Shown: one piece after another, positions 2,619-59,257 of the stretch
How the letters are laid out: every line of letters starts with the position of its first letter
How positions within the stretch are numbered: position 1 is the stretch's first letter
IMG/VR virus record: IMGVR_UViG_3300042564_002819
Span: 1-64,000 of that record
Strand: one strand, 5' to 3'
Length of the DNA stretch: 64,000 nucleotides
Made by a program: the position numbers and the translations under genes
Notes under the pieces: generated by a model
Told to the model about the DNA's origin: nothing
What the model saw: only the letters and a program-made list of their open reading frames with translations
The model's database searches: none

Positions 2619-3506
2619 ATGAGTGCTGACCAATTTAAATTTAAATTTACTAAAGAACAATTAAAAGAAATACTACACGGAAATCCAGATTCAGACAAAT
2701 GGTTTGAAGCATGTGTTTCAATTTTTCCAAAATATGAAATTACAACAATCGAGCGTGTAGCAGGATTTCTAGCCCAATGTGCTCATGAATCCGGTAATTT
2801 TAAAATGTTAGAAGAAAACCTAAACTATAAAGAAGAAACTCTTCTTAAAGTTTTCCCACGTTACTTTGGACCAGGAAAGCGTAACGCAAAAGAATACGCT
2901 CGTAACCCAGAGAAGATTGCAAACTATGTTTACATGGACGAGTTCCGTACTAGCAAGATGGGTAACGTAAAAGAAGGCGACGGCTGGAGATTCCGCGGTC
3001 GTGGACTTAAGCAGTTGACTGGTCGTGAGAACTACACTAACTTTGGTAAGAGTGTTAACATGACAGCAGAACAAGCCGCAGATTATGTTGCAACAGAAAA
3101 AGGTGCTATCGAATCAGCTTGCTGGTTCTGGAATAGTAAAAAATTAAATGCTGTTGCTGATACACAAGACATTGTTAAAATGACCAAGATCATCAACGGT
3201 GGCGACATTGGTTTAGCTGATCGTAAAAGCCGTTTTGAACATGCATTAAAGGTACTTGGCGGAAATTTTACGCCATCCGCTGCCGCATCAAGCGTATCTA
3301 CCGCAGCGTCAGCATCGACTTCAGAAACTTTAAAGAAAGGATCAAAAGGCCCTTCCGTAGCAAAATTGCAAGAAGCACTTGGAATTACAGCAGACGGCTC
3401 ATTTGGCCCTGGAACAGAGTCAGCATTAAAGGCTTGGCAAGCAAAGAATGGGTTAACAGCGGACGGAGTAGCTGGACCAAAAACGTTAGCAAAGTTACTA
3501 AGTTAA
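2619..3506 (+). CDS. Endolysin: glycoside hydrolase family 19 domain plus C-terminal peptidoglycan-binding domain
   Basis: FLAQCAHESG, DGWRFRGRGLKQLTGRENY, KIINGG GH19 motifs; Ala/Ser linker; LKKGSKGPSVAKLQEALG..ADGSFGPGT..ALKAWQ..NGL.ADGVAGPKT PG_binding_1 domain. Confidence 0.92.
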   Translation: MSADQFKFKFTKEQLKEILHGNPDSDKWFEACVSIFPKYEITTIERVAGFLAQCAHESGNFKMLEENLNYKEETLLKVFPRYFGPGKRNAKEYARNPEKIANYVYMDEFRTSKMGNVKEGDGWRFRGRGLKQLTGRENYTNFGKSVNMTAEQAADYVATEKGAIESACWFWNSKKLNAVADTQDIVKMTKIINGGDIGLADRKSRFEHALKVLGGNFTPSAAASSVSTAASASTSETLKKGSKGPSVAKLQEALGITADGSFGPGTESALKAWQAKNGLTADGVAGPKTLAKLLS

Positions 3507-4703: not shown

Positions 4704-5516
4704 ATGGACTATTATTCAATTTTAGGCGTTAGCAAGTCTGCAAGCCAAGAAGAAATTAAAAAAGCTTACAGAAATTTAGTTATGGAACATCACCCCGATA
4801 AGGGCGGTGACCATGCTAAGTTTTCTGCAATCAATGAAGCATACGAAACATTAAAAGATCCGGCTAAACGTGCAGAGTACGATTCGCCTACACCGCAAGG
4901 ATTCGCCTATCAAAACTTTAATGGCCCAAGATTTGAAGATTTGTTCTCAGATCTATTTGGTCAATTTAGACAGCAACAAGCAAAAAACAGAGACATAAAG
5001 CTGTCAATAACACTTTCTTTAGAAGACGTATTAACCGAAAAAGATTTGATAGTTAATTACTCGTTGCTTAATGGTAAAAATACACATGCAAATATTAAAA
5101 TTCATGCAGGGGTTGAAAGCGGAGAAAGTATTAGGTTTAGAGGACTCGGTGATAATACAATAAGTCATTACCCTCGAGGTGACTTGATTGTTTTTATAAA
5201 GATTAAAAATCATAATACATTTTTAAGAGACGGAAAACATTTAAAAATTACACATTCGGTTAACATTTTCGATTTAATTTTAGGAACAAAAATTGAATTG
5301 GGTGTGTTATCCGGCGGAAAAATAAGTTTATCAGTTCCAAAGGGAACACAACCCGGAACAGTTATGAGTGTTTCGGGATATGGATTGCCGTGCTATAGAA
5401 CAGGTATAACTGGTAATTTATATGTTACATTGAAAGGTGTTGTTCCAAAAATTGAAGATAAGAAGTTATTAGAAAGGATTCAAGAATTAAATGATGCAAT
5501 TAATAAAGGCTCCTAA
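4704..5516 (+). CDS. dnaJ: DnaJ/CbpA-type co-chaperone (J domain plus C-terminal domain, no zinc finger)
   Basis: DYYSILGV..ASQEEIKKAYR...HHPDKGG J domain with HPD; RFRGLG, GDL, VPKGTQPG, G.GLP C-terminal motifs. Confidence 0.92.
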   Translation: MDYYSILGVSKSASQEEIKKAYRNLVMEHHPDKGGDHAKFSAINEAYETLKDPAKRAEYDSPTPQGFAYQNFNGPRFEDLFSDLFGQFRQQQAKNRDIKLSITLSLEDVLTEKDLIVNYSLLNGKNTHANIKIHAGVESGESIRFRGLGDNTISHYPRGDLIVFIKIKNHNTFLRDGKHLKITHSVNIFDLILGTKIELGVLSGGKISLSVPKGTQPGTVMSVSGYGLPCYRTGITGNLYVTLKGVVPKIEDKKLLERIQELNDAINKGS

Positions 5517-6009
5517 CTTAATGTTAGAGGCTCCTGTTAAAAAGTTTGATTACGAATTAATGCATCCAGCACCGCTTGCACTCGACATGATAGACATCAT
5601 GAATAAAGAAAGTGGGCTTGGGTTAAGTGCAAATCAAGTAGGATTGAACGCACAAATCTTTGTTATGAAAACTATATTAAATAAAACCCACGGCAATCCG
5701 TTGGTAGTTATTAACCCTATAATTACAGGTTTGAGCAAAGAGATAGAAGAAGGTATAGAAGGCTGCTTGAGCCATCCTGATTTATTCTTGAAGGTTAGGA
5801 GACCTATATCCTGTACAGTTGAATTTGACACCTTGACAAATGACCTTAAAAGTGTTATACATGTAGATACAAAGTTCGATGACATAGATGCCCGCATATT
5901 CTTACACGAATATGATCATTTGCACGGCATTCAGTTTACTAACCGAGTCAGTAAATTGAAACTAACAATGGCAGAAAAACGTCGATTAAAAAGGAAAAAG
6001 AATGGTTGA
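5491..6009 (+). CDS. def: Peptide deformylase
   Basis: GLGLSANQVG, EGCLS and HEYDHLHG motifs. Confidence 0.93.
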   Translation: MMQLIKAPNLMLEAPVKKFDYELMHPAPLALDMIDIMNKESGLGLSANQVGLNAQIFVMKTILNKTHGNPLVVINPIITGLSKEIEEGIEGCLSHPDLFLKVRRPISCTVEFDTLTNDLKSVIHVDTKFDDIDARIFLHEYDHLHGIQFTNRVSKLKLTMAEKRRLKRKKNG

Positions 6010-8260
6010 GCCAACTAAACACTTACAATTAGTTTTTGATAAAGCTAACAATGATGCAAAAAAGTTGCAACACGAGTATATTACACTTGAGCATCTTTTG
6101 TACGCAATGCTATGTGATGAAAATTTTGAAGGCATTATTACTGGGTACGGTGCAGACCCAGTTCTAATGAAGAAAAATTTAGAAAATTATCTTAAAACTA
6201 AGTTAGAAGAAATTAAAGTTACTGATACTAAGTATAAGCCTAAAAAAACTAGTACAGTTGAAAGAGTGCTTAGTCGTGCGTTTGCACAGGTACTTTTCCA
6301 AGGAAGAAATCAAATTGACATCTCTGATGTTTTTATAAGCATCTTGAGTGAAAAAAGATCACATGCATACTTTATCACTCAGCAAGCTGGCATTGACAAA
6401 GATAAATTTGTCATGCACATTAACACAGATGTCGAAGAGTACAGCGAAGCTACTCAAGAAGTATTTGAAAATCAAGGTATTGCAAGTAAAGCACTAAAAA
6501 CATTTACTACTGATTTGAATGCTAATGTTAAGGCAAATAAGATTGATCCGGTGATTGGTCGAGATGAAGAAATTGAACAAGTTGCATTGGCTCTCGGTCG
6601 TCGTACAAAATCTAACGTGCTAATGGTCGGCGATCCGGGTGTTGGTAAAACTGCAATTGCAGAAGGTCTTGCATGGCGTATTGTTAACAAGCAAGTGCCT
6701 AAGTTCTTAGAAGACTATACTGTGTACTCGTTGGACATTGGAAGTATGCTTGCTGGTTCCAAGTATCGCGGAGACTTTGAAGAACGATTTAAACTTGTGT
6801 TGCAAGGCTTAACTACAAAAGGCAACACCATTATGTTTATCGACGAAGCACACATGATTTCAGGTGCCGGTGCCGGTAGCGGAAACAGTGCAAACGATCT
6901 TGCTAATATGCTAAAACCTGCACTGTCAAAAGGAAATATTAAAGTAGTTGCATCTACTACTTGGGAAGAATATCGCAAGTATTTCGAAAAAGATCGTGCT
7001 CTTATGCGTCGTTTCCAACGTGTAAGTGTTGACGAACCTACGTCCGAGATGGCAATTGATATTCTTAAAGGAGTTAGAAAATACTACGAAGAGTATCACA
7101 AGGTCGAAATTACTGACGCAGCAATTGAAGAAGCTGTTAAGTTATCAGTAAAATATCAAGCTGACAAAAAGCTTCCTGATAAAGCGATTGATCTTATCGA
7201 CGTTGCATGTTCTAGATTTAAAGTTCTAGAACAAGAAGATAATAAAGTAGTTGACGTCAAGAATATTCAATTTGAATTGGCAAAGTTAATTAAGATTCCT
7301 GAAGAACAAGTTGCTGAAAAAGAAACTGAAAATCTTGCTCACCTCGAGTCTAATCTTAAAGGAAGTGTATACGGACAAGATTCTGCAATCGAAACTATTG
7401 TCGACAAGATTTTAGTAGCACAAGCCGGTCTTAAATCAGAAAACAAACCTATTGGGTCGTTTGTGTTTATGGGTCCAACTGGTACAGGTAAGACTGAAAC
7501 AGCCAAACAACTTGCAAAACATCTCGGAGTAAATCTTGTTAGATTTGACATGAGTGAATACCAAGAAAAGCATTCGGTTGCAAAGTTTATCGGTGCACCT
7601 CCGGGTTATGTAGGGTTTGAAGACAACGCCGGACAACTTATAGTTAAGCTACAGGAGAATCCAAATTGCGTTCTTTTGCTTGACGAAATTGAAAAAGCAC
7701 ATCCAGAAGTTAGTGCAGTTTTGTTGCAACTAATGGATAACGGTAAAGTCACTGGCTCAAACGGCAAAGAAGCAGATGCGAGAAATTGCATACTTATCTT
7801 AACTACTAACTTAGGTGCTAAAGAAGCAGAGAAGAACAGTATCGGATTTGGAGACAGCTTAGAAAGAGATTACGAAGACGGTGAATTAAAGAAATACTTT
7901 GCACCAGAATTCCGTAATAGACTTGACGCTATTATTACATTTAGCAAGCTTGGTAAACCGGTAATGCTCAAGATTGTAGGGAAGTTCTTGTCTGAACTTA
8001 GAGATCAGGTTGCTGGAAAAGAAATTAAGATTTCAGTTACCGACGAAGCTCTTGACTATCTTGTTGACAAAGGTTTTGATACTAAGATGGGAGCTAGACC
8101 GTTGCAACGTGTTATTGACAAAGATATTAAACGTCCACTATCGAGACTTATGTTGTTCGGAGAGTTAAAGAACGGCGGCAAAGTTAACATCAATTTAAAA
8201 AATAATGAGATAACCCTTGAAGTATTTGCAAATGAAGAATCAAAAATTGCACGAAACTAA
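6002..8260 (+). CDS. clpA: ClpA-like AAA+ chaperone/protease ATPase subunit
   Basis: Clp N domain, two Walker A motifs (GDPGVGKT, GPTGTGKT), KYRGDFEER, RFDMSEYQEKHSV, GARPL; 752 aa without the ClpB middle domain. Confidence 0.93.
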   Translation: MVEPTKHLQLVFDKANNDAKKLQHEYITLEHLLYAMLCDENFEGIITGYGADPVLMKKNLENYLKTKLEEIKVTDTKYKPKKTSTVERVLSRAFAQVLFQGRNQIDISDVFISILSEKRSHAYFITQQAGIDKDKFVMHINTDVEEYSEATQEVFENQGIASKALKTFTTDLNANVKANKIDPVIGRDEEIEQVALALGRRTKSNVLMVGDPGVGKTAIAEGLAWRIVNKQVPKFLEDYTVYSLDIGSMLAGSKYRGDFEERFKLVLQGLTTKGNTIMFIDEAHMISGAGAGSGNSANDLANMLKPALSKGNIKVVASTTWEEYRKYFEKDRALMRRFQRVSVDEPTSEMAIDILKGVRKYYEEYHKVEITDAAIEEAVKLSVKYQADKKLPDKAIDLIDVACSRFKVLEQEDNKVVDVKNIQFELAKLIKIPEEQVAEKETENLAHLESNLKGSVYGQDSAIETIVDKILVAQAGLKSENKPIGSFVFMGPTGTGKTETAKQLAKHLGVNLVRFDMSEYQEKHSVAKFIGAPPGYVGFEDNAGQLIVKLQENPNCVLLLDEIEKAHPEVSAVLLQLMDNGKVTGSNGKEADARNCILILTTNLGAKEAEKNSIGFGDSLERDYEDGELKKYFAPEFRNRLDAIITFSKLGKPVMLKIVGKFLSELRDQVAGKEIKISVTDEALDYLVDKGFDTKMGARPLQRVIDKDIKRPLSRLMLFGELKNGGKVNINLKNNEITLEVFANEESKIARN

Positions 8261-8927
8261 AAAACTGCATTACGGAAAATATTTGTACAAGATTAGTATC
8301 GAAAATCCTCTGACATATATTTTCCGTACACAGAATCAACGTAGTGGTAAACTCGGCTATGCTAGAACTAAACTAGAAGAGTTTGTCACTAACAAAAAGC
8401 CGAAGTCTTTTGTATTAAATACACGATACAGAAAAACAGTAGTCGAGCCCGAACACATCAAAGATGCACAATCGATTTATAATATACTCAGAATCGAGGA
8501 AGATTATATAATAAGATGTGAGCACAAGAAGTTACTCATTTATAGCAATTCTGTAGACTTAATCGACAAAATTTCTAATAAAGTAGTAGGTGAAGTCGAA
8601 ACCTGGAAGCCAGATGATAAAGCATTATCTACTTTAACAGAACAAAAAAACGTTATTATAAGTAACAAACCTACCGACTATCCTTACAAAGTTACGTTTG
8701 GTAACAAACCTGCAAAGCCTGAATTAGCTGCGTGGATTGCAAAAAATACCGATAAAGTATTAGCCGGACCTATCTTGATGAAAAATCTCCAATACGGCCT
8801 TCGGTGGATACAAGGACAGTACATATTTGCTAGAGACGAAAACATTATTATGTTATTACAAATGATTGTTGGTGATAACATAGCAAGAATTGATAAAATA
8901 ATCTATAAGGCTAATATAGATAAATAG
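8217..8927 (+). CDS. Hypothetical protein
   Basis: Long ORF overlapping the clpA end; start may be 8232. Confidence 0.7.
   Translation: MKYLQMKNQKLHETKKLHYGKYLYKISIENPLTYIFRTQNQRSGKLGYARTKLEEFVTNKKPKSFVLNTRYRKTVVEPEHIKDAQSIYNILRIEEDYIIRCEHKKLLIYSNSVDLIDKISNKVVGEVETWKPDDKALSTLTEQKNVIISNKPTDYPYKVTFGNKPAKPELAAWIAKNTDKVLAGPILMKNLQYGLRWIQGQYIFARDENIIMLLQMIVGDNIARIDKIIYKANIDK
8919..8926 (+). promoter_or_regulatory. Putative late promoter (GATAAATA)
   Basis: Late consensus ending 5 nt before the ATG at 8932, at the head of the small modular-protein cluster. Confidence 0.55.
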
Positions 8928-8931
8928 TTAT

Positions 8932-9297
8932 ATGTCAGTAACTAGCGAAATTATTTTATCAGTGCAAACTCATCCTGTCGGTAACAGTGAAGAATCTGTT
9001 ACCGGCAATTCCTTTAAAGGCGACGGATATTACAATAGATCCGACGGATTTCATACTGTGCAGTACAGTGTTATTGGATTTGTTGGTACTATCAAGATGC
9101 AAGCCACACTGTCTACTAGTCCAGCCGAAGGCGATTGGTTCACAGTATCTGATTCAGTTCATACAAGTGCTAACACTAATGCAACTGAAAGTAATGGTTC
9201 ATTTATTAAAAATTTTACAGGTAACTATGTGTGGGTTAGAGCAGTCATATCCGGTTGGACTGCTGGCACTGTTTCGTCGATATTGTTAAATCACTAA
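8932..9297 (+). CDS. Hypothetical protein, beta-rich, possibly a virion component
   Basis: 121 aa, Ser/Thr/Gly-rich; follows a late promoter. Confidence 0.65.
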   Translation: MSVTSEIILSVQTHPVGNSEESVTGNSFKGDGYYNRSDGFHTVQYSVIGFVGTIKMQATLSTSPAEGDWFTVSDSVHTSANTNATESNGSFIKNFTGNYVWVRAVISGWTAGTVSSILLNH

Positions 9298-9306
9298 GGA
9301 AGTATT

Positions 9307-9903
9307 ATGAAAAATTTTATAAGTATAATTTGGGAAGAAGGCAACGTAAATAAAGACAAGCTAGTCGAATCTGTAATTAATACTAACAATCTTCCACTAA
9401 ATGAGAGTAATGTAAAATACATATCCGGCAAAACCGAACAGGGTGCTAACTTATTACGTATAGCTATTACTAAAAATTTATCAGAAAGCGAATGCGATAT
9501 ACTTGCAGATAAAATTGCAGATAAAGTATTTGAAATGGGCCTAGATGACTTCGATCTCGAATTTACTACTGAAGATGAAGTAGTGGATGAAGAAACCTAC
9601 GATGGCGATGAATTCTACGAAGCATACGGAGTTATGTGGTTCAACGAAGACGAAATATTAGACGAAGCAGAATATCAAGGACGCAAAGTACCGCTAGGAA
9701 AACCTATGCGTGGTGACGTTAAAAAATTTAAAGTGTATGTAAGAAACCCAAGTGGCAACGTAGTTAAAGTAAACTTCGGCGATCCTAACATGAAAATTAA
9801 AAAGTCTAACCCAGCAAGACGCAGAAGTTTCCGTGCAAGACACAATTGTGATAATCCTGGACCTAGAACTAAGGCAAGATATTGGAGTTGCAGGGCTTGG
9901 TGA
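9307..9903 (+). CDS. Two-part protein: acidic N domain plus basic C module (VKKVNFG-type, ARYWSC) seen in large myoviruses
   Basis: LDE|AEYQGRKV...KFKVYV..NVVKVNFGDPNMKIKK.NPARRRSFRARHNC...KARYWSCRAW. Confidence 0.65.
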   Translation: MKNFISIIWEEGNVNKDKLVESVINTNNLPLNESNVKYISGKTEQGANLLRIAITKNLSESECDILADKIADKVFEMGLDDFDLEFTTEDEVVDEETYDGDEFYEAYGVMWFNEDEILDEAEYQGRKVPLGKPMRGDVKKFKVYVRNPSGNVVKVNFGDPNMKIKKSNPARRRSFRARHNCDNPGPRTKARYWSCRAW

Positions 9904-10012
9904 TGCATTACAATACTTTACATTGGAAAAAAAGCATGGGTAAGCACATTAGTAGAGGAAAACATAAAAACTTCCTAGTCGAACAACTAAGTACATATAA
10001 GGATTTGACATA

Positions 10013-10369
10013 ATGGTAAAAATAGTCGAATTTACCGATCTTGCATTAAATGCACACACCAATGAACCTAATGGAGCACTTCCTTGGGATGTAGTAGAAG
10101 ATTTGGTTGTGTATATGCGTAACGAGCCAAACTTTTACAGACAAAAGTTATACCCTACAATGTTAGAAGTTCAAAAAACTGTTAAAAAAGGCGGCAAGTT
10201 TAATAAAAGAAAAATGATACCTCTTGTAGACGAAGCTGTTTTGTCGTATATTAAAAAGTATAACATCAAAAAAACACCAGAAGAATTGCTATCAGATTCT
10301 GAAAAAATGGATTGCATTTCTAAAATTTTAGAAGACGAAGTAGAAAACTTTAAAAAAGGATCTTATTAA
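10013..10369 (+). CDS. Hypothetical protein
   Basis: 118 aa ORF coupled to the next gene; MVKIVEF N-terminus. Confidence 0.7.
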   Translation: MVKIVEFTDLALNAHTNEPNGALPWDVVEDLVVYMRNEPNFYRQKLYPTMLEVQKTVKKGGKFNKRKMIPLVDEAVLSYIKKYNIKKTPEELLSDSEKMDCISKILEDEVENFKKGSY

Positions 10370-11886
10370 TGCAACTAAGAGAACTGTTTAATCAAAATAA
10401 GACAACAGCAGTTCTTGCATTTGGAAGAATGAATCCAATTACTATTGGACATCGCAAATTAGCTGAAACAATAAAAAGTATACCCGGCGACGGTTATATT
10501 TTTCTTTCTCATAAACAAAATTCTAAAACCGATCCTTTAAGTTTTGAAACAAAACTTAAGTTTGCAAAAGAATACTTTCCAGGGATAACTGTTGGTGATT
10601 CGTCGGTAAGAACTATTATCGAAGCTATTAAAAAAGTAAATTCACTAGGTTACACAAAACTGGTTTATGTAGCAGGTTCGGACAGAGTTAACGAATTTAC
10701 ACAACTACTAAATGCATATAACAATAAAGAATACTTCTTCGAGAGTATTGAAATAGTTAATGCAGGAGCACGAGATCCTGACGCCGAAGGTGTCGAAGGC
10801 ATTAGTGCAAGCAAACTTAGAGAAGCTGCTATAAAAAATGATGTTAAAACATTTCTAGCAGGAACTCCTAACAACAAGTTTTCTTTAGAAATGTTTGAAG
10901 CTGTTCGTAAAAATATGACCGATGTTACGTCCGAGCCCAAGCATAGCAATGTAAAAAAAAATGATTTAATACCAGCATTGGAAAAATTTCTTCCAATTGC
11001 TATGGAAGTATTAAACATTGAAAAACTTCCAAAAATTAAACTAGAAAAACATATAGAAACAAAAGATCAGCCATCATTTGGCAGATTTGTAAATGACAAA
11101 GTTGTTATCCACCTAGGAATTCAAAATCGTCATCCTATAGATATTCTAAGAACATTGGCTCATGAACTTGTACATTTTAAACAATTACTAGATGGAAAAC
11201 TAGACAAAAATAGTGGCATGACAGGAAGCCCTGAAGAAAACGAAGCACACATTAAAGCAGGCATCGTTATGCGTCTGTTTGACAAAAAATATCCAGAATA
11301 TTTTAAAGAACCAGCAGTTAATTTTTCAGAATCAAAAGTAATGTATGTCGAACCGCAGTTCGACGTAGAATGGGATGAGGCAAAAAGATATCCCGAATTT
11401 GCTAAGTTAGGATTCGAAGGATGGCTCAACCTTGTTAAAAAAGGCAAAGCTGTAACTATTAAATCGGCAAAGGGTATAAACAACACCGATGCTAATGAGC
11501 CTGATAGTTTTAAATCTTTAGATCAAAACAAACAAAAACGAGCAATGTCGCAAATACAAAGCGGCAAAGTAGAAATGCCAATAATAGCAGTTTACCCAGA
11601 TGGTTGGAAAGAGCTTATTGGCGGAAATACTCGTTTAACAGGGATGTTAGCAACACAAAGCAAAGCAACTGTTTGGGTCTTTAAAGTTCCTAATGAAATT
11701 CTAGATGAAAACTTTGCAGATGGTAAAGTAAAAGGTAAAAGCAGACCAGGACGTGTAAAACGTGCAGGTGCTAGTTGCAACGGTAGTGTTACAGCACTAC
11801 GTAAAAGAGCAAAAAACAGTTCAGGTGAAAAAGCGAGGATGTATCATTGGTGTGCAAACATGAAGAGTGGACGCAAGAAGAACTAG
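10369..11886 (+). CDS. Multidomain protein: HIGH-type nucleotidyl/cytidylyltransferase + HExxH module + ParB/Srx-like module + basic C-terminal module
   Basis: FGRMNPITIGH, YVAGSDRV, RDPDAEGVEGISASKLR; LAHELVH...ENEA; MPIIAVYPDG..ELIGGNTRL; Cys-containing basic tail. Confidence 0.7.
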   Translation: MQLRELFNQNKTTAVLAFGRMNPITIGHRKLAETIKSIPGDGYIFLSHKQNSKTDPLSFETKLKFAKEYFPGITVGDSSVRTIIEAIKKVNSLGYTKLVYVAGSDRVNEFTQLLNAYNNKEYFFESIEIVNAGARDPDAEGVEGISASKLREAAIKNDVKTFLAGTPNNKFSLEMFEAVRKNMTDVTSEPKHSNVKKNDLIPALEKFLPIAMEVLNIEKLPKIKLEKHIETKDQPSFGRFVNDKVVIHLGIQNRHPIDILRTLAHELVHFKQLLDGKLDKNSGMTGSPEENEAHIKAGIVMRLFDKKYPEYFKEPAVNFSESKVMYVEPQFDVEWDEAKRYPEFAKLGFEGWLNLVKKGKAVTIKSAKGINNTDANEPDSFKSLDQNKQKRAMSQIQSGKVEMPIIAVYPDGWKELIGGNTRLTGMLATQSKATVWVFKVPNEILDENFADGKVKGKSRPGRVKRAGASCNGSVTALRKRAKNSSGEKARMYHWCANMKSGRKKN

Positions 11887-11958
11887 AGCATTATGTTCGT
11901 GTTTTAAAAGAACACGAACTACGTAGGGCAAGTACCGACGAGAGGAACAAGTATTGGT

Positions 11959-12186
11959 ATGAATATAGAAGATCTAAAGAGATTAGCAGGAATAACAGAA
12001 TTTAAAGGTTATACACCTTACGAAGGTTCTAACATTTCTGTAACCGGGACTGAAAAGCGTCGTATAGAACGAGAAAAAAACATTAAACCTGGAGACAAAG
12101 AATGGTTTGAATTGTGGTTTAATCTTCCATACATGACAGGTTCGCTAAATACAAAGCCGGGCTTTAGAGGACGAAAGAAAAAATGA
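11959..12186 (+). CDS. Small hypothetical protein
   Basis: 75 aa; MNIEDLKRLAGI N-terminus, IKPGDKEWFELWF motif. Confidence 0.7.
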   Translation: MNIEDLKRLAGITEFKGYTPYEGSNISVTGTEKRRIEREKNIKPGDKEWFELWFNLPYMTGSLNTKPGFRGRKKK

Positions 12187-12578
12187 GATTCAAAGATATT
12201 ATTTCCGAAGCATCCAAGCCAAAAGATTATGGAATTCCAGCTGCTATAGATCCTGATGTTGAACGATCAATTCCGGGAACTTTTGTTATACCCGAATTAA
12301 GAAACACAGATCCCTACATGCAATATCGTATGGGATTAGCACTTGCAGTTGCACAAGCAACTAAAAGCAGAGAAGTTAAGTTTGATCAAGAAACAGCTTG
12401 GGCTGAAAATTTTATTACTACTGCATATGCCGAAGAAGAACAAGAAACTATTAAACTAGCAGCAAAGTTAATGGGAGTTAGTACAAGGCAAGTTACCAGT
12501 ACTAAAAGTCAAGAGATCGACAGCGTTAACAAAACAAGTCCAGTTGCTAAACCAAAACGCAACAAATACGGAGTTTAA
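12183..12578 (+). CDS. Hypothetical protein, paralog A
   Basis: Shares QYR..ALA core and NKTSPVAKPKRNKYGV C-terminus with 12580..12966. Confidence 0.75.
   Translation: MRFKDIISEASKPKDYGIPAAIDPDVERSIPGTFVIPELRNTDPYMQYRMGLALAVAQATKSREVKFDQETAWAENFITTAYAEEEQETIKLAAKLMGVSTRQVTSTKSQEIDSVNKTSPVAKPKRNKYGV
12528..12565 (+). repeat. 38-bp direct repeat, copy 1
   Basis: AACAAAACAAGTCCAGTTGCTAAACCAAAACGCAACAA, identical to 12916..12953. Confidence 0.9.
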
Positions 12579-12579
12579 C

Positions 12580-12966
12580 ATGAAAGTAAGAGAAATTGTA
12601 AGCGAAGCTGCTGGAAGCAAATTATCAAAAAGAGAACAAGAAGCAACTGTAGGATTGCATACATACGACGATGGCCCAAATCTTGGAGCATTCGGCAGTG
12701 ACTACGGACAATACAGATTAATGATGGCTCTTGCTTGTTCCGACGGAAAGACTCCGCCTGATATAGATGCATTAAGCTGGATCGGGAAGAAGAAAACTGC
12801 ACACCCTTATACCGATGTTGAAGCAGAAATGCTTAAGCAAGGTTATAAAGTAATCGGTCTAAAATACGACGACTTAAATAAAGGTGATACAAAAAGCAAA
12901 GAGCTTGATAGCACAAACAAAACAAGTCCAGTTGCTAAACCAAAACGCAACAAGTATGGTGTATAA
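12580..12966 (+). CDS. Hypothetical protein, paralog B
   Basis: Start moved to MKVREIVSE at 12580, immediately after the paralog A stop; same C-terminus as paralog A. Confidence 0.75.
   Translation: MKVREIVSEAAGSKLSKREQEATVGLHTYDDGPNLGAFGSDYGQYRLMMALACSDGKTPPDIDALSWIGKKKTAHPYTDVEAEMLKQGYKVIGLKYDDLNKGDTKSKELDSTNKTSPVAKPKRNKYGV
12916..12953 (+). repeat. 38-bp direct repeat, copy 2
   Basis: Identical to 12528..12565. Confidence 0.9.
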
Positions 12967-13418
12967 TGAAAATTGAAGACCTATTCGAAGAAAAAGGAAC
13001 AAAAGCTGAAGCAGGTTATCAGCCCGATCCTAAGAATGGTCAAAAATGTATTAATTGTACAATGTGGAGAGATCCAAACAAGTGTACAGCAGTTGCAGGT
13101 AATATTAGTCCAAACGGTTGGTGCAAATGGTATGCCGGCGGTGCTTACGGTAAGCGTGGCAAAAAAATCGACGAAGACGGACGTATTGTGAAAGGTGTTA
13201 ACACTACTATTGACGTAGGTCCGGACGAAATTAAAAAGCAAAGTGCAAAGTTTGGAAACTCAGTAACAAAAGATGGATTACCTCCATTTTTAAGAACAAA
13301 CGGTAAGGTAAACGAAGAAGCCAAGTATACTTTGCGTGAATGGGCAGCAATTCAAGGTGGACATACTTTAGAAGATGAACCAATAAAACCTAAGTTATTT
13401 GATTGGAATAAATATTAA
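12966..13418 (+). CDS. Protein with N-terminal HiPIP-like [4Fe-4S] domain plus further short modules
   Basis: AGYQPDP..GQKCINCTMW...KCTAVAGNISPNGWCKWY matches the HiPIP pattern Y..C-x2-C..C..V.G.I...GWC; no signal peptide. Confidence 0.72.
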   Translation: MKIEDLFEEKGTKAEAGYQPDPKNGQKCINCTMWRDPNKCTAVAGNISPNGWCKWYAGGAYGKRGKKIDEDGRIVKGVNTTIDVGPDEIKKQSAKFGNSVTKDGLPPFLRTNGKVNEEAKYTLREWAAIQGGHTLEDEPIKPKLFDWNKY

Positions 13419-13419
13419 T

Positions 13420-13611
13420 ATGCTAATTCGCGAGTTACAAGATACAAAAGTTTTTTCAATATTTGTTGCAACTGTACAAGTTAAACAAAACTTTTATAGT
13501 CAATGGATCCCTGTGCAGGTGTCGGCCCGTAACATGCAAGAAGCAAAACAGCAGATTCTAGCCCAATATGGAAAAGATTCAAAAATTAGCGGATTAAAAA
13601 AAGCAAAATGA
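13420..13611 (+). CDS. Small hypothetical protein
   Basis: MLIRELQD start at 13420, just after the previous stop. Confidence 0.6.
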   Translation: MLIRELQDTKVFSIFVATVQVKQNFYSQWIPVQVSARNMQEAKQQILAQYGKDSKISGLKKAK

Positions 13612-13781
13612 AAATTGTAGAGATAACTGAAAAAGCTTTATTAAAAACTCCATTGGGTAGAGAAAAAATAAAAGCAGACCAAGCTAGAGGAAATGATCCT
13701 TGGCCTAAAAAAAGTAAGCCTACACTTGGCCCTACACAAAAACATCCACTGCGTGGAAAATTAGTTGGAGGCGGCTTATAA
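13608..13781 (+). CDS. Small basic hypothetical protein (57 aa, not in ORF track)
   Basis: Manual translation MKIVEITEK...HPLRGKLVGGGL*; ATGA and TAATG coupling on either side. Confidence 0.7.
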   Translation: MKIVEITEKALLKTPLGREKIKADQARGNDPWPKKSKPTLGPTQKHPLRGKLVGGGL

Positions 13782-13957
13782 TGAAAATACTTGAAATAAT
13801 TGAGTCTGCATCAGCAGGAGCCACTGGTGCAAGTGGAATAGCAACTGTTGTTAATCCATCTAAAAAATCTAAAAAGTCTAAAACATGGAAACCTACTGAT
13901 AATGCATTAGACATGAAAAATACAAGTTTGTTTGGCACAACTCTAATAAAACGATAA
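13781..13957 (+). CDS. Small hypothetical protein (58 aa, not in ORF track)
   Basis: Manual translation MKILEIIESASAGATGASGIATVVNP...NALDMKNTSLFGTTLIKR*. Confidence 0.7.
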   Translation: MKILEIIESASAGATGASGIATVVNPSKKSKKSKTWKPTDNALDMKNTSLFGTTLIKR

Positions 13958-13969
13958 ATATAATAAATA
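13953..13969 (+). promoter_or_regulatory. Tandem putative late promoters (GATAAATA, AATAAATA)
   Basis: Two late-consensus boxes upstream of GGAG and the ATG at 13984. Confidence 0.5.
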
Positions 13970-13983
13970 TTCCGGAGATTACA

Positions 13984-14499
13984 ATGAGAAATAAAAAGAT
14001 TAGCGAAGGACTATCAGAGTTAGCAGACACAACAGATCGTGATCATGAAATTCAGATGGCTCGTGCAGAATTATATAAAATTGCAGATTATGCTATCCAA
14101 CTACATAATCTATTAAGAAATATTTCAGAAGAAGAAGGTCTAGAAGCCTGGCAACAATCAAAAATAACAAAAGCAGCCGATTATGTTGGCTCTGTATTCC
14201 ATGCACTATCATACGATAAGAAAGTTCAACCTTCAGTCGGATCACCTACACCGCCAATGGCATCAAGTCCTGCACAGCTAGGAATGTCAGAATCCGATAT
14301 CAAAAACTATAAGTCGTTGCTTGAAAAAGCAAAGTCAAGAGCACAACAAAAGTTTATGGGCATGGTTTATGCTGCAAAGAAAGGCGAAAAGCCTGCTAGT
14401 CCAGAAGTTGCTAAAGTTGCAAAAGGCATGAGTAAGAGTGATGCAAAAGACTTTGCAAAAACAAAGCACAAAGGTAAACCAGAGCACGTCAAGAAATAA
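13984..14499 (+). CDS. Hypothetical protein with C-terminal DUF3008-like basic module
   Basis: HEIQMARAEL..LEAWQQSKITKAADY module followed by AKSRAQQKFMGMV..AKKG...MSKSDAKDFAKTKHKGKPE. Confidence 0.65.
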   Translation: MRNKKISEGLSELADTTDRDHEIQMARAELYKIADYAIQLHNLLRNISEEEGLEAWQQSKITKAADYVGSVFHALSYDKKVQPSVGSPTPPMASSPAQLGMSESDIKNYKSLLEKAKSRAQQKFMGMVYAAKKGEKPASPEVAKVAKGMSKSDAKDFAKTKHKGKPEHVKK

Positions 14500-15095
14500 T
14501 GGAATATGCCGAGAATCTAGTTTGGAAAAATATTGATCCGGACCATATGTGGATTCTTGATAAGCTAATACTGTCTAAAAAATTAAATTATACTAGTGGC
14601 CCGGTTGGTTTAGACGTACCAAAGCCGGGCCACTATATTGTTAGACCCTGTGTCAATATGCAAGGCTTAGGGTTAGGAGCACAACGAGTTTGGCTTGAAA
14701 AATCTACAAAGCATTTGCCTGTGGGATACTTTTGGTGTGAGTGGTTCGAAGGCAGACACTTGAGTATAGACTATCATCATGGTAAACAGGTTTTAGCAGT
14801 CGAAGGGCATAAACCTGATAACACATTTACACGATGGGATAGTTGGATTAAAGTTTCTGATAGACTAAAGATGCCCGATGTAATAAAACCTTTTGCTGAA
14901 ATATACGAATGGATTAACATAGAGTATATCGGAAAGAAATGTATAGAAGTACATTTTAGACACAATCAAGATTTTGAAAATAATATAACACATTTTATTC
15001 CTGTGTGGGAGGGCGACAGTACTGAGCCACCAGAAGGCTATTCTTACAAAGTGTATCCGGATGTACACGGAAGAATAGGTGCGTTTGTAAAATAA
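14499..15095 (+). CDS. Hypothetical protein, possible ATP-grasp-like fold
   Basis: YIVRPCVNMQGLGLGA, WCEWFEGRHLSIDY, INIEYIG..IEVHFR echo ATP-grasp motifs. Confidence 0.45.
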   Translation: MEYAENLVWKNIDPDHMWILDKLILSKKLNYTSGPVGLDVPKPGHYIVRPCVNMQGLGLGAQRVWLEKSTKHLPVGYFWCEWFEGRHLSIDYHHGKQVLAVEGHKPDNTFTRWDSWIKVSDRLKMPDVIKPFAEIYEWINIEYIGKKCIEVHFRHNQDFENNITHFIPVWEGDSTEPPEGYSYKVYPDVHGRIGAFVK

Positions 15096-15098
15096 AAA

Positions 15099-15127
15099 TT
15101 GACTTTTTTGGTATCTTGTATTACATT
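15099..15127 (+). promoter_or_regulatory. Sigma70-type promoter of the replication operon
   Basis: TTGACT-17nt-TACATT, then AAGGAG and ATG at 15146. Confidence 0.65.
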
Positions 15128-15706: not shown

Positions 15707-18373
15707 GTGCCGTACGTTGACGCAATGTTCGATAGAGATAATGATATTATCCGATTAGTCGAACGAAAAGATGGTAAAAGAATTTATCAAGAATATCCAG
15801 TAAAATATACTTTCTATTACGGTGATCCTAAAGGCAAATATAAAAGCGTTTATGGTGATCCGCTTAGTAGAATAGTCTGCAAGAATACTAAAGACTATAG
15901 AAAAGAACTTGCAATTAACAAAAATAAAACACTATTCGAGTCTGACATTAATCCTATTTTTCAATGCTTAAGTGAAAATTATGAAAATCAAGATGCACCA
16001 AAGTTAAACGTTGCATTTTTTGACATCGAGACCGACTTTGATCCTGAGAGAGGATTCGCTCCAACAAACGATCCCTTCATGCCAATTACGGCAATTACAG
16101 TTCATTTGCAATGGTTAGATGCATTAATTACGCTGGCTGTTCCTCCAAAAACTCTCACAATGGAACAAGCTAAAGAACTTTGCGTTGAATGGGGTGACTC
16201 ATGTATACTGTTCGAAAAAGAAGCAGACATGCTTGATACATTTCTTGACTTAATACAAGACGCTGACATTTTAAGCGGTTGGAACTCAGAAGGGTATGAC
16301 GTTCCTTATACTGTAAATAGAGTAGCTCGTGTACTAAGTAAGAACGACACTAGAAGATTCTGTTTGTGGGATCAACATCCCAAAAAACGAGAATACGAAA
16401 AATATGGAAAAACTTCTGAGACATATGATTTTGTAGGCCGTGTGCATATTGACTCGCTAGAGCTTTATAGAAAATACACATACGAAGAACGTCATAGCTA
16501 TAGACTTGACGCGATCGGCGAAATGGAGATCGGCGAAAACAAAACTGTTTACGAAGGTACGCTAGATCAACTGTATAACAACGACTTTAGAACTTTTATT
16601 GAATACAACAGACAAGACGTTGCACTACTCGACAAACTAGATAAAAAACTTCGTTTTATTGATCTAGCAAATGAAATTGCACATGATAATACAGTTCTAT
16701 TGCAAACTATTATGGGTGCCGTAGCTGTTACTGAACAAGCTATTATTAACGAAGCACACAGACGAGGTATGCAAGTTCCTAACAGACGTGATCACGGCGG
16801 TAACACTCAAGCTGCCGGTGCGTATGTTGCATATCCTAAAAAAGGGTTGCATCAGTGGATTGGTTCTATGGACTTAAACAGTTTGTATCCATCTGTTATT
16901 AGAGCGTTGAACATGGCGCCAGAAAGTATCGTTGGGCAATTAAGACCTGAATATACAGATCAATATATCTACGAACAAATGACGTTGCATAAAAAGAGTT
17001 TTGCGGCAGCATGGGAAGGCCTATTTGGTACTTTTGAATATATGTGGGTTATGGAACAGCGTAGAGATAAAACAATTACAATCGACTGGGAAGACGGAAG
17101 ATCGGATGTTTTAAGCGGTGCTGAAATTTATAAATTAATGTTTGACAGCAACATGCCGTGGATGATTAGTGCCAATGGCACTATATTTACACACGAGTTT
17201 GAATCTGTTATTCCTGGATTGTTAGCTCGCTGGTATAAAGAACGTAAAGAACTACAAGCAATGCTTAAAAAAGCAAAGGATGCAGGAAACGAAACAGAAA
17301 TTTCGTTCTGGGATAAGCGACAGCTAGTTAAGAAAATTAACCTTAATAGTTTATATGGTGCTATTCTAAATCCAGGTTGCAGATTCTTTGATAAAAGAAT
17401 AGGTCAGTCAACTACACTCACCGGTAGACAGATTGCAAAACACATGGCTGGAAAAGTAAATGAAATAGTTACTGGCGATTATAACCATGTTGGACAAGCT
17501 GTAATCTACGGTGATACAGACTCTGTATATTTTAGTGCGTATCCAACACTTAAAAACGAGATCAATGCAGGAAAAATACCGTGGAGTAAAGAAAACGTTG
17601 TTACATTGTATGATCAGATTGCCAACGAAGTAAACAAAACATTTAGTGATTTTATGGGAAGTGCATTCCATTGCCCAAAAACTCGTGCCGAAGTTATTAA
17701 AGCAGGTCGCGAAATTGTAGGCGAAACTGGATTGTTTATTACTAAGAAACGCTATGCTGTTCTAGTGTATGACGAAGAAGGCAAGCGTAAAGATATCGAC
17801 GGTAAGCCAGGTAAAATAAAAGCAATGGGTCTTGATCTTAAACGCTCCGATACGCCAGTATTCATGCAAGACTTTTTGTATGATCTTTTAACTATGGTAT
17901 TGCTACAAGAACCTGAAAAAGCAATTCTCGATAGTATTACAAAATTTAGAAGAGACTTTAAATCTAGACCTGGTTACGAAAAAGGTTCTCCTAAACGTGC
18001 TAATAACATTCAAGCATATCAACGAGAAGAAGCAAAACTCGGAAGAGCTAACATGCCTGGACATGTTAGGGCAAGTATTAACTGGAATACATTAAAACGC
18101 ATGAACGGTGATCGATATTCACAAGAGATTGTTGACGGTATGAAAGTTATTGTTTGCAAGGTAAAACAAAATCCTCTAGGATTTACCAGTGTCGCATATC
18201 CAACTGACGAACTGCGTTTACCTCAGTGGTTTAAAGAATTGCCGTTTGATGATAGTGCAATGGAAGAAGTTATCATTGATAACAAGCTTGATAACCTAAT
18301 CGGAGTTCTAGATTACGATTTGCAGTCAACAAAGCAAAACACAACTTTTAATTCTTTATTTGAATGGGAATAA
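15707..18373 (+). CDS. Family B DNA polymerase (T4 gp43-like)
   Basis: Exo I FFDIETD, Exo II GWNSEGYD, Exo III YNRQDV; Pol motifs DLNSLYPS, KKINLNSLYG, YGDTDS, KKRYA; GTG start after AAGGAG; no intein. Confidence 0.96.
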   Translation: MPYVDAMFDRDNDIIRLVERKDGKRIYQEYPVKYTFYYGDPKGKYKSVYGDPLSRIVCKNTKDYRKELAINKNKTLFESDINPIFQCLSENYENQDAPKLNVAFFDIETDFDPERGFAPTNDPFMPITAITVHLQWLDALITLAVPPKTLTMEQAKELCVEWGDSCILFEKEADMLDTFLDLIQDADILSGWNSEGYDVPYTVNRVARVLSKNDTRRFCLWDQHPKKREYEKYGKTSETYDFVGRVHIDSLELYRKYTYEERHSYRLDAIGEMEIGENKTVYEGTLDQLYNNDFRTFIEYNRQDVALLDKLDKKLRFIDLANEIAHDNTVLLQTIMGAVAVTEQAIINEAHRRGMQVPNRRDHGGNTQAAGAYVAYPKKGLHQWIGSMDLNSLYPSVIRALNMAPESIVGQLRPEYTDQYIYEQMTLHKKSFAAAWEGLFGTFEYMWVMEQRRDKTITIDWEDGRSDVLSGAEIYKLMFDSNMPWMISANGTIFTHEFESVIPGLLARWYKERKELQAMLKKAKDAGNETEISFWDKRQLVKKINLNSLYGAILNPGCRFFDKRIGQSTTLTGRQIAKHMAGKVNEIVTGDYNHVGQAVIYGDTDSVYFSAYPTLKNEINAGKIPWSKENVVTLYDQIANEVNKTFSDFMGSAFHCPKTRAEVIKAGREIVGETGLFITKKRYAVLVYDEEGKRKDIDGKPGKIKAMGLDLKRSDTPVFMQDFLYDLLTMVLLQEPEKAILDSITKFRRDFKSRPGYEKGSPKRANNIQAYQREEAKLGRANMPGHVRASINWNTLKRMNGDRYSQEIVDGMKVIVCKVKQNPLGFTSVAYPTDELRLPQWFKELPFDDSAMEEVIIDNKLDNLIGVLDYDLQSTKQNTTFNSLFEWE

Positions 18374-18809: not shown

Positions 18810-18987
18810 GATTTACAACTTAATAGCACGTCTAGAAGAAAAGATTAACAATTTAATCAACTCTACTGAAAGACAAGAGCAAGAATTAACTTTGCTTAGA
18901 AATGAATTCGAACTTGTTAAAAACGAAGGTTGTTGGCTTTCTAAACAAAATCCAGATCATGTACACGGAGATTTTAAACATGAATAA
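18790..18987 (+). CDS. Small coiled-coil hypothetical protein
   Basis: 65 aa, overlap-coupled on both sides. Confidence 0.6.
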   Translation: MHDKDLEIYNLIARLEEKINNLINSTERQEQELTLLRNEFELVKNEGCWLSKQNPDHVHGDFKHE

Positions 18988-19702
18988 ATTTATCTTTGAT
19001 GTTGATGGAACATTAACTCCTAGCAGAATGCCAATTGACAAAAACTTTGCTGAATACTTTATATCTTTTTGCAATGATAATTCTGTTTATCTAGTTACCG
19101 GTTCTGACTATGCTAAAACTCTTGAACAATTAGGAGAAGACATTTGTCTTTCTGTAAAAAAAGTATACAATTGTTCCGGAAACGAAGTACGAGAAAAAGA
19201 AACATTGGTTAAATCAAGCGATTGGTCTTTATCCAAAAATGCAAAAGAATGGCTGTTAAATCAACTGTCTCAAAGTTCTTTTCCTTTAAGAACTGGCAAT
19301 CATATTGAAGAACGTACCGGAACTGTGAATTTTAGCGTTGTTGGTAGAAATGCAACTTTAAAAGAAAGAATGATGTATGTTCAATACGACCGTATGACTA
19401 ATGAACGAGAATTGATTGCAACAGATTTTAATCTTACATTTGACACATTGGATGCAAAGGTCGGTGGTGAAACAGGAATCGATATCTTTTTAAAAGGACA
19501 CGACAAACGTCAGATTATTAAAGATTTTAGTAAGCAACATAAACTTATCTTTTTTGGAGATAGGATGGATATTAAAGGAAATGATTATCCTTTAAAGAAT
19601 GAAATTGAAACTAATAACCGAGGTATTTGTTATAACGTTAAAGATTGGCAAGATACTTACGAACGGTTAATGTATTTGCAGGAGGCCAAGATAGCAGCAT
19701 GA
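18980..19702 (+). CDS. HAD-IIB phosphomannomutase (eukaryote-type PMM family)
   Basis: FIFDVDGTLT, LVTGSD, IEER.GTVNFSVVGRNA, GGETGIDI, FFGD...GNDYP. Confidence 0.85.
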   Translation: MNKFIFDVDGTLTPSRMPIDKNFAEYFISFCNDNSVYLVTGSDYAKTLEQLGEDICLSVKKVYNCSGNEVREKETLVKSSDWSLSKNAKEWLLNQLSQSSFPLRTGNHIEERTGTVNFSVVGRNATLKERMMYVQYDRMTNERELIATDFNLTFDTLDAKVGGETGIDIFLKGHDKRQIIKDFSKQHKLIFFGDRMDIKGNDYPLKNEIETNNRGICYNVKDWQDTYERLMYLQEAKIAA

Positions 19703-24611: not shown

Positions 24612-24806
24612 ATGGCAATTACTAACCCTACCGTTAACAAAGTGTTTTCGGACCTTGAAGAGTTTCGTAACTTTTGTCGATTTGAAGGGCATGTGTTTAA
24701 CGAAGCAGATTTGTATAAGTCTGACGCTAGAGCGTGGCAGGCATTTACAAAGCACAGGAATTGGCTTCGTGCAAAGTCAAGAGTAAAGGTAAAGCGTAAT
24801 GCGTAA
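24612..24806 (+). CDS. Small hypothetical protein
   Basis: 64 aa after AAGGAG; DLEEFRNFCRFEGHVFNEADLY. Confidence 0.7.
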   Translation: MAITNPTVNKVFSDLEEFRNFCRFEGHVFNEADLYKSDARAWQAFTKHRNWLRAKSRVKVKRNA

Positions 24807-59255: not shown

Positions 59256-59257
59256 GT

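Follow-up and report, generated by a model that had tools for sequence, protein, structure and literature searches.

Candidate capsid-targeting leaders and predicted protease sites in a gene cluster of an uncultured jumbo phage

In bacteriophage T4, gp21 cuts after L/I-x-E, and gp24 and the internal proteins (IPs) are made with propeptides of 10-20 residues that are capsid-targeting sequences (CTS); the first ten residues of IPIII are enough to package foreign proteins, and the CTS is the sole conserved part of the diverse internal proteins of T-even phages (PMC9026906, PMC5694885, PMC3012670). In Alt, cuts at ITE-6 and LTE-619 remove six residues and 63 C-terminal residues, respectively (PMC9026906, PMC5694885, PMC3012670). 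In the T4 record, the N-termini read MAKINELLRE/S for gp24, MELITE/LFDE for Alt, MNEPQLLIE for gp21 and MEGLIE for gp67, and gp23 has FLTE/AEIGG, the slash marking here and below a cut or predicted cut; we placed these positions on h-x-E, except ITE-6 of Alt and LIE-9 of gp21, which are given by the literature. Proteins injected by a phage act before phage gene expression, and to our knowledge almost none are known outside T4, the phiKZ-like phages and a few podophages. The present work concerns a cluster of small genes in the first 64 kb, hereafter the window, of the virus record IMGVR_UViG_3300042564_002819, which has a size of 330,024 bp. Comparative analysis leads us to propose, with a probability of about 0.68, that this cluster encodes proproteins and polyproteins which are targeted to the capsid and processed by a gp21-like protease, in which case the system would be a variant of the T4 internal-protein system.

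Leader motif and h-x-E junctions

What is observed at this locus is a leader motif, its restriction to the cluster, a shuffling of modules, the conservation of the junctions between them, and promoter boxes. Genes are designated below by the position of their first nucleotide. Of the nine genes that lie between 10013 and 13957, eight begin with the motif used for counting, M-x-[ILVFMY]-x-[DEQ]-[ILVFMY], and also with its narrower form M-[KRQNL]-[ILVF]-x-[ED]-[LI]; gene 10013 itself (MVKIVEF) fits the counting motif with an offset of one residue. Over the rest of the window this motif is found on 2 of 84 open reading frames (ORFs), 48980 and 55444, which corresponds to an enrichment at p=4e-9 (Fisher). 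These two matches (MIYDELTHFK and MRVEELNRYF, respectively) sit among radical-SAM and unknown genes and may be due to chance. About 80 related IMG/VR loci, on contigs of up to 340 kb, were collected with the 171-aa protein of 13984 as the query; they form one clade, with polymerases 74-92% identical and a shared synteny. The motif heads 241 of their 675 plus-strand ORFs between the homologues of 8932 and 15146 and 0 of 485 ORFs outside (p=5e-67). A sequence-only reading of the window had described a shared, capsid-targeting-like N-terminus on nine genes. All nine N-termini that it quoted are present, at 10369, 11959, 12183, 12580, 12966, 13420, 13608, 13781 and 13984, and the motif is indeed not equally frequent outside the cluster, but its list has to be amended: eight of the nine fit the motif, whereas 13984 has no leader, and 10013 had been missed. 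As a leader, the start of 13984 (MRNKKISE) was discarded, its homologues beginning with MTKKTNEGL or MTKKIKEGL and the stretch lying within a conserved domain. The start of 9307 (MKNFISIIWEE), which has the T4-type spacing, was also rejected, AlphaFold placing residues 2-9 in the first strand of a folded N-domain.

A total of 207 unique leaders give the consensus M-[KR]-[ILV]-x-[ED]-[LI]-x-E; Glu occupies position 8 in 88 of them and position 9 in 48, so that the leader consists of two tandem h-x-E units. Between the genes of the cluster, neither the leader codons nor the upstream DNA are conserved, which indicates a selection on the peptide. A DNA-level cassette (shared promoter, ribosome-binding site or recombination box) was excluded as the source of the motif, because codons and upstream sequences differ by gene. 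Leader-bearing paralogues of 12183 and 12580 (MRAKEFIVEY, MRASEFINES, MKISELLRES) are also met in other phage types, downstream of a gp41-like helicase and a carbamoyltransferase in one case (L004:8001-9457) and directly upstream of a T4-type large terminase in the other (L005:42-973).

By homology, the cluster genes are mosaics whose modules move between genes and start right after h-x-E. Module A (YQGRKVxLGKP.., phrog_7595) makes the C-terminal end of proteins of 124-791 aa; in the fusions of the clade it comes after an invariant E/A-E-Y, with h-D ahead in nearly all of them, and the junction region has a pLDDT (predicted local distance difference test) below 50 in the AlphaFold2 (AF2) model of 9307. 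A stand-alone, leaderless module A starting with MAKYKGR, MAIYRGR or MATYKGK is found in viruses that are not T4-like: Pelagibacter podophage HTVC111P, siphophage Kolga, Roseobacter phage CRP-901 and a Nitrosopumilaceae spindle-shaped virus. Since the module is complete as a leaderless protein, its free N-terminus coincides with the predicted P1' residue. Module A with a leader or a junction is found in Kyanoviridae (MKKFKQYIDE..ELTE/AEYQGKK in phage C48C1), in Flavobacterium phage immuto (ELDE/GEY junction) and in this clade, and gp55 of Roseobacter phage CRP-6 (L097:1489-2178) is module A fused to a Peptidase_S78_2 prohead protease. The host and virus range is unusually broad for an 80-aa module (motif YxG[RK]xVxLNKP...RARHxC...ARYWSCRxW), the stand-alone copy of the archaeal spindle-shaped virus being its ORF8 (L091:2531-2782).

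In 17 of 23 unique contexts, module B (GRIVKGVNTT) comes immediately after a Met-leader; in the window (KKIDE/D) and in three other contexts, it comes after a leader-like internal stretch. NFADGK (module C or linker) is preceded by Glu in 43 of 43 related loci, and DUF3008 is always preceded by h-x-E/KAKS, in 13984 by LLE/KAKS (aa 114/115, nt 14325/14326). Of the module boundaries that had been proposed for the cluster, LDE/AEY, LDE/NFA, IDE/DG and FSE/SK are module starts in relatives and VNE/EA is plausible, but MSE/SD is not the best site, DUF3008 starting instead after LLE/KAKS, where h-x-E is conserved in relatives. A search with residues 200-445 of 10369 against 5.8 billion proteins gave 727 proteins, on contigs of up to 370 kb, in which a common ParB/Srx-like module is combined with varied domains (NT5C nucleotidase, Zeta/AAA_33 kinase, ParB, pterin-4a dehydratase, chitinase plus LysM, Cu/Zn superoxide dismutase (SOD) and GNAT). 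In the best 120 of the 727, with lengths of 295-868 aa, at least 63 proteins are leader-initiated and the NFADGK linker occurs 106 times, with Glu at P1 in 106/106 and L, I or V at P3 in 86/106 (81%; 35/50 unique contexts) against a background of 18% (p=1e-15); 21 of these proteins have two or three such linkers ahead of different modules.

These junctions can also be read without any cutting: the leader would target the protein to the prohead core or serve as a docking helix, the fusions would work intact, and h-x-E/NFADGK would be flexible linkers, conserved as recombination joints for the shuffling of domains. Module shuffling is extensive, and a conserved linker would provide it with microhomology, but the linker is conserved as a peptide, with an invariant Glu at P1 and a P3 rich in L, I and V, which is the specificity of gp21 and is unneeded by a passive linker. 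Similarly, targeting is separable from processing in T4, where Asp at position 10 stops cutting but not packaging (PMC9026906); at our locus, however, the stand-alone module A begins exactly at the predicted P1', and the position of an acidic pro-part next to a basic module suggests release. We hold this explanation to be unlikely.

Virion evidence, promoters and prohead protease

Over 159 aa, the N-domain of 10369 shares 42% identity (E 6e-37) with the cytidylyltransferase T4-GC190 of Synechococcus phage S-SM1 (SSM1_190), a protein detected in purified virions (YES in the proteomic-data column of the supplementary table; PMC3037559). SSM1_190 starts with MKKFSAFLNE, which has the T4 CTS spacing (F4, F7, L8, E10), and Kyanoviridae neighbouring genes in Melnitz, S-SRM01, C48C1 and HTVC008M have the same leader type.

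The T4 late promoter consensus is TATAAATA. In the window, GATAAATA occurs four times on the plus strand (1283, 8919, 13953 and 40793), each copy lying between genes with a start codon 13-42 nt downstream of it. The first T4-late-promoter-like box of the cluster (8919-8926) lies at its head, 13 nt upstream of 8932, and the second (13953-13960) is upstream of 13984. The sequence-only reading had noticed late boxes ahead of the cluster, and both boxes flanking it turn out to be conserved in relatives: the box is kept in 10/10 unique upstream regions of 8932 homologues, and [G/C]ATAAATA is found in 34/40 for the 13984 homologues. At the end of the late unit, a sigma-70-like promoter (TTGACT-17-TACATT, 15099-15127, plus strand) stands ahead of 15146; TTGAC..TATAAT-type promoters are present in the listed upstream regions of homologues of this gene, and an ATAAATA box in 0 of 51 unique ones. 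The promoters were assigned by consensus matches, and this arrangement fits a T4-like late transcription unit. Further xATAAATA boxes are candidate late promoters, those at 1283, 40793, 35373 (CATAAATA) and 53159 (TATAAATA) lying 20-45 nt upstream of genes 1316, 40835, 35405 and 53209, respectively; the product of 40835 is tail-fibre-like, with Mtd_N and Chlorovirus glycoprotein repeat hits.

The family-B DNA polymerase of the window (15707-18373) shares 50% identity with its counterpart in Sinorhizobium phage Phosso, 45% with that of Agrobacterium phage Atu_ph07 and about 43% with those of Rak2/121Q-like coliphages, and the phage appears to be a jumbo myophage from an aquatic habitat, uncultured, with Atu_ph07 and the Rak2-like phages as relatives. 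A near-identity (megablast) comparison of the region with 50,697 phage records gave no match, and thus no close cultured relative. The gp21 homologue of Atu_ph07 is gp204, 42% identical to S-SM1 gp21 (E 2e-32). Starting from gp204, head modules were found on more than 530 IMG/VR contigs, one of them of 250 kb, in the order portal, 70-aa MRLIEFYNPEF protein, 261-aa protein, protease, scaffold-position protein and major capsid protein; the protease of these environmental modules is 48-54% identical to gp204 and belongs to Peptidase_S77 (Pfam PF03420). In Atu_ph07, the small protein that follows the portal, gp199, starts with MKLTELFNP, so that, together with MRLIEFYNPEF, the leader type also marks a gene in head-core position. 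The scaffold-position protein of Atu_ph07 (gp214, L099:31475-32719, annotated Rad50) ends with INDLKRLAGIKK and its environmental equivalent (L186:10637-11749) with MIRKLAGLSK; both are encoded directly ahead of the major capsid gene and look like scaffolds. The N-terminus of 11959 carries DLKRLAGI, the C-terminal motif of gp214, of which the environmental ending is a variant, and this suggests that a second, mimicry-based route into the prohead may exist. We infer a link between the environmental head modules and the leader cluster from their similar divergence from Atu_ph07, common samples and similar GC.

Another explanation would be that the products are not packaged but are intracellular late or host-takeover proteins, whose N-terminus would serve recognition by a ClpA-like unfoldase or DnaJ, degradation or translation, any cutting being due to another protease, for example the HExxH-containing 10369. 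A gene for a ClpA/ClpB-like ATPase indeed stands 0.7 kb upstream of the cluster, with a DnaJ gene close by, but the ClpA-DnaJ pair is also present in Atu_ph07, without any leader genes. The HELVH of 10369 has a faint, sub-threshold resemblance to Peptidase_M91 (E 0.05), but this mid-region is matched by only 3-5 homologous segments in the related loci, and is thus too sparse for a general processing enzyme. AT-rich genomes often have second and third codons rich in AAA and AUU, yet the 485 neighbouring ORFs are devoid of the motif despite an equal codon bias. Since, in addition, the cyanophage homologue is found in virions and the promoters are of the late type, we consider an intracellular role quite improbable. 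That the leader is a by-product of common descent, one small gene having been duplicated repeatedly and its N-terminus kept by inertia without joint function, is very improbable: 12183 and 12580 are clear paralogues and the loci all belong to one clade, but unrelated domains stand behind the leader (nucleotidyltransferase, HiPIP, P-loop kinase, HAD phosphatase and others), in a clade where polymerases have diverged to 74-92% identity the leader persists, encoded by freely varying codons, and a similar leader is found in Kyanoviridae and T4.

If the products are capsid-targeted and protease-cut, as we propose, nt 8919-14499 would be a late-transcribed, hyperplastic cargo locus, the products of which would be made as proproteins and polyproteins. 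The leader would be the form that the T4 CTS takes in this lineage and would dock the protein on the scaffolding core of the assembling prohead; a gp21-family (Peptidase_S77) protease would then cut after Glu, at the leader and at the linkers L-D-E/AEY, L-x-E/NFADGK and h-x-E/KAKS. Cutting would free very basic small modules as well as the NMNAT/cytidylyltransferase-like, HExxH, ParB/Srx-like and HiPIP-like domains, which would remain with the packaged DNA and then be ejected into the host alongside it. We infer targeting, cleavage, injection and the action of the cargo in this phage from the sequence comparisons given above. The roles of the cargo in the host (DNA charge neutralisation, NAD/nucleotide metabolism, anti-defence) are guesses, and so is a function as immediate effectors, which had been suggested earlier.

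Several points weigh against this proposal. The related loci all come from one clade, so that the counts made on them are not phylogenetically independent. The h-x-E motif is short and common and takes its weight only from positional conservation, and NFADGK could owe its invariant preceding Glu simply to a conserved linker or a domain cap. As 9307 and 13984 have no detachable leader, their targeting would need another route. In the 64-kb window there are no head genes, the gp21-like protease included. Protein-guided scans, begun from Atu_ph07 gp204, the environmental proteases and a nearer sample, and degenerate DNA pattern scans found no contig with both the leader cluster and a gp21-like protease, and the flanks of the environmental head modules contain no homologue of a window gene. 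At the position of the cluster, Atu_ph07 has tail-fibre and other genes, none with a leader; since it is devoid of the cluster, its proteome is unable to test the packaging idea. The view of the sequence-only reading, that head-packaged cargo or polyproteins are encoded here, is supported by all the comparative tests that were run, but the gp21-like protease that it expected elsewhere in the genome lies outside the window and was not tied to a contig carrying the cluster.

Genes of the cluster and its surroundings

The genes of the cluster, from 8932 to 13984, lie on the plus strand. The first gene of the late unit, 8932 (8932-9297, 121 aa), has no leader; its product has a homologue at the syntenic position in Atu_ph07, gp290 (the Atu_ph07 locus being 31% identical), and a weak virion-structural PHROG match (phrog_14467, E 3e-6). 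The 198-aa product of 9307 (9307-9903) is a candidate proprotein composed of an acidic ferredoxin-like N-domain (aa 1 to ~107), a disordered junction and the basic module A. Its pro-part (aa 1-121) has an isoelectric point (pI) of 4.1 and a net charge of -22, the site in the junction ..h-D-E/A-E-Y is at aa 120/121 (nt 9666/9667), and module A covers aa 121-198 (nt 9667-9900, phrog_7595), with a pI of 11.3 and a net charge of +17 for aa 122-198. In the AF2 model, the N-domain has only a generic ferredoxin-like fold and module A is of low confidence, and the Foldseek hits (PII, S6) are not specific. Gene 10013 (10013-10369, 118 aa) has the offset leader MVKIVEF (MVKIVEFTD), and its homologues begin with MKIVEF, MRIVEF or MKINEF.

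The candidate polyprotein of 505 aa encoded by 10369 (10369-11886) starts with the leader MQLRE/LF, followed by a cytidylyltransferase/NMNAT-like domain (aa ~10-200, nt 10396-10968). This N-domain is below the Pfam cut-off for PF01467 (19.5 bits for a cut-off of 21), and matches the PHROG cytidyltransferase families with E 1.7e-50 and 2.5e-34; a protein of 75% identity is named NaMN adenylyltransferase in its source. The HExxH-containing module comes next (aa 201-321, HELVH at nt 11161-11175). Pfam searches on isolated modules (E up to 1) gave it only the Peptidase_M91 match mentioned above and, this match being below the Pfam cut-off, a peptidase is not claimed. After the site FSE/SK, the ParB/Srx-like module E (aa 322-447, nt 11332-11709) has a conserved GGNTRLT and no Pfam hit; its AF2 model reaches a pLDDT of 92, and roughly the first 40 Foldseek hits are without exception ParB, Noc, PadC, Srx, KorB or SbnI (E 0.017-0.1, TM score ~0.4). 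The linker LDE/NFADGK (nt 11709/11710) then leads to the basic module C (aa 448-505, nt 11710-11883, net +15).

Apart from 10369, 12966 and 13984, the cluster genes encode small basic proteins without a match to known families, and the products of the small cluster genes have a pI of 9.8-10.4. Gene 11959 (11959-12186) encodes a basic protein of 75 aa with the N-terminus MNIEDLKRLAGI, DLKRLAGI being at nt 11971-11994. Genes 12183 (12183-12578, 131 aa, leader MRFKDIISE/A) and 12580 (12580-12966, 128 aa, leader MKVREIVSE/A) are paralogues with a common basic C-terminal tail, NKTSPVAKPKRNKYGV; an ESM Atlas search with 12183 was uninformative. The three-module protein of 12966 (12966-13418, 150 aa, leader MKIEDLFE/E) has a HiPIP-like domain (PF01355; aa 9-57, nt 12990-13136; 26.8 bits for a cut-off of 22, E 6.5e-6) in which four Cys are visible, then an internal leader remnant, KKIDE/D, ahead of module B (aa 72-117, nt 13179-13316); VNE/E separates module B from a tail module (nt 13317-13415). 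Three basic proteins follow, of 63 aa (13420-13611, leader MLIRELQD, in 13 related loci), 57 aa (13608-13781, leader MKIVEITE/K) and 58 aa (13781-13957, leader MKILEIIE/S); the latter two, absent from the initial list of ORFs and put forward as genes from the sequence, are conserved ORFs with tblastn matches in 18 and 10 related loci, respectively. The last member, 13984 (13984-14499, 171 aa), is a two-module protein with no canonical leader, made of a helical N-domain (aa 1 to ~100) and DUF3008 (PF11450; aa 116-169, 35.8 bits for a cut-off of 24), the latter module spanning nt 14326-14496 with a net charge of +12. Sequence searches of the PDB with 9307, 10369 and 13984 gave no match. At the end of the second late unit, a 198-aa protein without leader (14499-15095, phrog_3577, E 2e-45) is found in 21 related loci.

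The window has a GC content of ~35% and no tRNA genes. Its gene order is DnaJ (4704-5516), ClpA/ClpB-like ATPase (6002-8260), 8232, 8932, the cluster, 15146 and the DNA polymerase; the frame is the same in Atu_ph07, with gp293 (DnaJ), gp292 (ClpA), gp290 (homologue of 8932), gp281 (homologue of 15146) and gp277/276 (polymerase). The DnaJ protein, just upstream of the cluster and syntenic with gp293, has DnaJ and DnaJ_C domains, and the 752-aa double-AAA ATPase, syntenic with gp292 and about 0.7 kb upstream of the cluster, has a Clp_N domain; no ClpP partner was found among the window ORFs scanned. A likely endolysin (2619-3506) combines a chitinase class I/lysozyme-like domain (sub-threshold) with PG_binding_1, and chitinase-plus-LysM domains of the same kin are found inside some leader-bearing polyproteins (P0079, P0085). 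Radical-SAM PHROG matches are located at 47796-48914, 56998-58182 and 62549-63916, with unscanned ORFs adjoining on both strands (regions 46744-48914 and 58146-63916); together with a SAM synthetase (31860-32954), a phosphomannomutase-like protein (18902-19702) and a glycosyltransferase (24799-25962), they point to a pathway that modifies sugars or nucleotides. A MoxR-like AAA ATPase (36823-37905) and, after it, a putative metallopeptidase of the DUF2201 type that has a VWA-like domain (38018-39304) form a conserved two-gene unit in phages.

Comparison with described systems

Injected proteins are prime candidates for anti-defence and host-takeover functions. If our proposal is true, the rule of a leader plus an L-x-E linker would let the injected proteome of abundant uncultured aquatic phages be read from metagenomes, the scale here being more than 500 IMG/VR contigs and more than 700 polyprotein variants. 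It would also extend the T4 CTS concept to polyprotein cargo, provide a natural cassette with which capsids could be loaded with foreign proteins, and explain a cytidylyltransferase as a core virion protein of marine cyanophages. A wider reading, which we put forward tentatively and doubt slightly more than we believe, is that the uncultured aquatic jumbo clade and, in a related form, the Kyanoviridae package a shuffling arsenal of enzymes (nucleotidyltransferase, ParB/Srx-like, kinase, nucleotidase, SOD, lysozyme, GNAT, HiPIP) as polyproteins cut by the protease at the L-x-E/NFADGK cassette, any domain flanked by the cassette being injected cargo ("plug-and-inject").

In Kyanoviridae, T4-GC190 lies downstream of gp41 and adjoins module A and DUF3008 genes, with the leaders MKKFSAFLNE, MKKFSEIIEA and MKKFKQYIDE, which are of the 10-residue T4 type, whereas the clade has a form of 8-9 residues. 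In the literature searched, we found no paper reading the Kyanoviridae cytidylyltransferase and its neighbours as CTS-bearing cargo, and the searchable literature has no prior description of CTS-like leaders in cyanophages or in this jumbo group, nor for DUF3008/HVA1. The phiKZ group (phiKZ, 201phi2-1, SPN3US) resembles our clade in being jumbo phages with paralogous cargo and head-internal proteins cut after Glu at several sites (PMC9026906, PMC5694885). It differs in having a diverged gp21 homologue, S/A-x-E sites with Ser, Ala or Gly at P3 and propeptides of more than 100 aa, whereas P3 is Leu, Ile or Val and the leaders have 5-9 aa in the clade, which, unlike the phiKZ group, belongs to the Atu_ph07/Rak2-related group. 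With viral polyproteins, the cluster shares a single product with several unrelated domains and a repeated short recognition motif between them, but the presumed protease is a prohead maturation protease acting inside the procapsid and not in the cytoplasm, and cleavage is here predicted.

The IPs and Alt of T4 resemble the cluster products in a short leader ending with h-x-E, a variable locus, diverse and mostly small basic cargo and late-type promoters, and a gp21-family protease is present in the phage lineage (Atu_ph07 gp204). The leaders of the clade are nearer to those of Alt and gp24 than to the IP leader MKTYQEFIAE: MELITE/LFDE of Alt is similar to MQLRE/LFNQ of 10369, MAKINELLRE of gp24 to MKINELLNE of relatives, and LTE/AE of gp23 is mirrored by the module-A junction LDE/AE of the clade. 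Compared with the IP-type CTS, the clade consensus is shorter by 1-2 residues. The charge pattern of the clade, an acidic pro-part (net -22) beside basic modules (+12 to +17), is in keeping with the basic T4 internal proteins. Unlike in T4, many of its products are multi-module fusions of up to ~870 aa with the L-x-E/NFADGK linker, its cargo has recognisable enzyme domains, and the phage is an uncultured 330-kb jumbo phage known from sequence. Relative to the T4 CTS system, three things would be new: a shorter leader, the joining of several enzymes into polyproteins through a dedicated L-x-E/NFADGK linker, and a jumbo lineage that is uncultured and very abundant.

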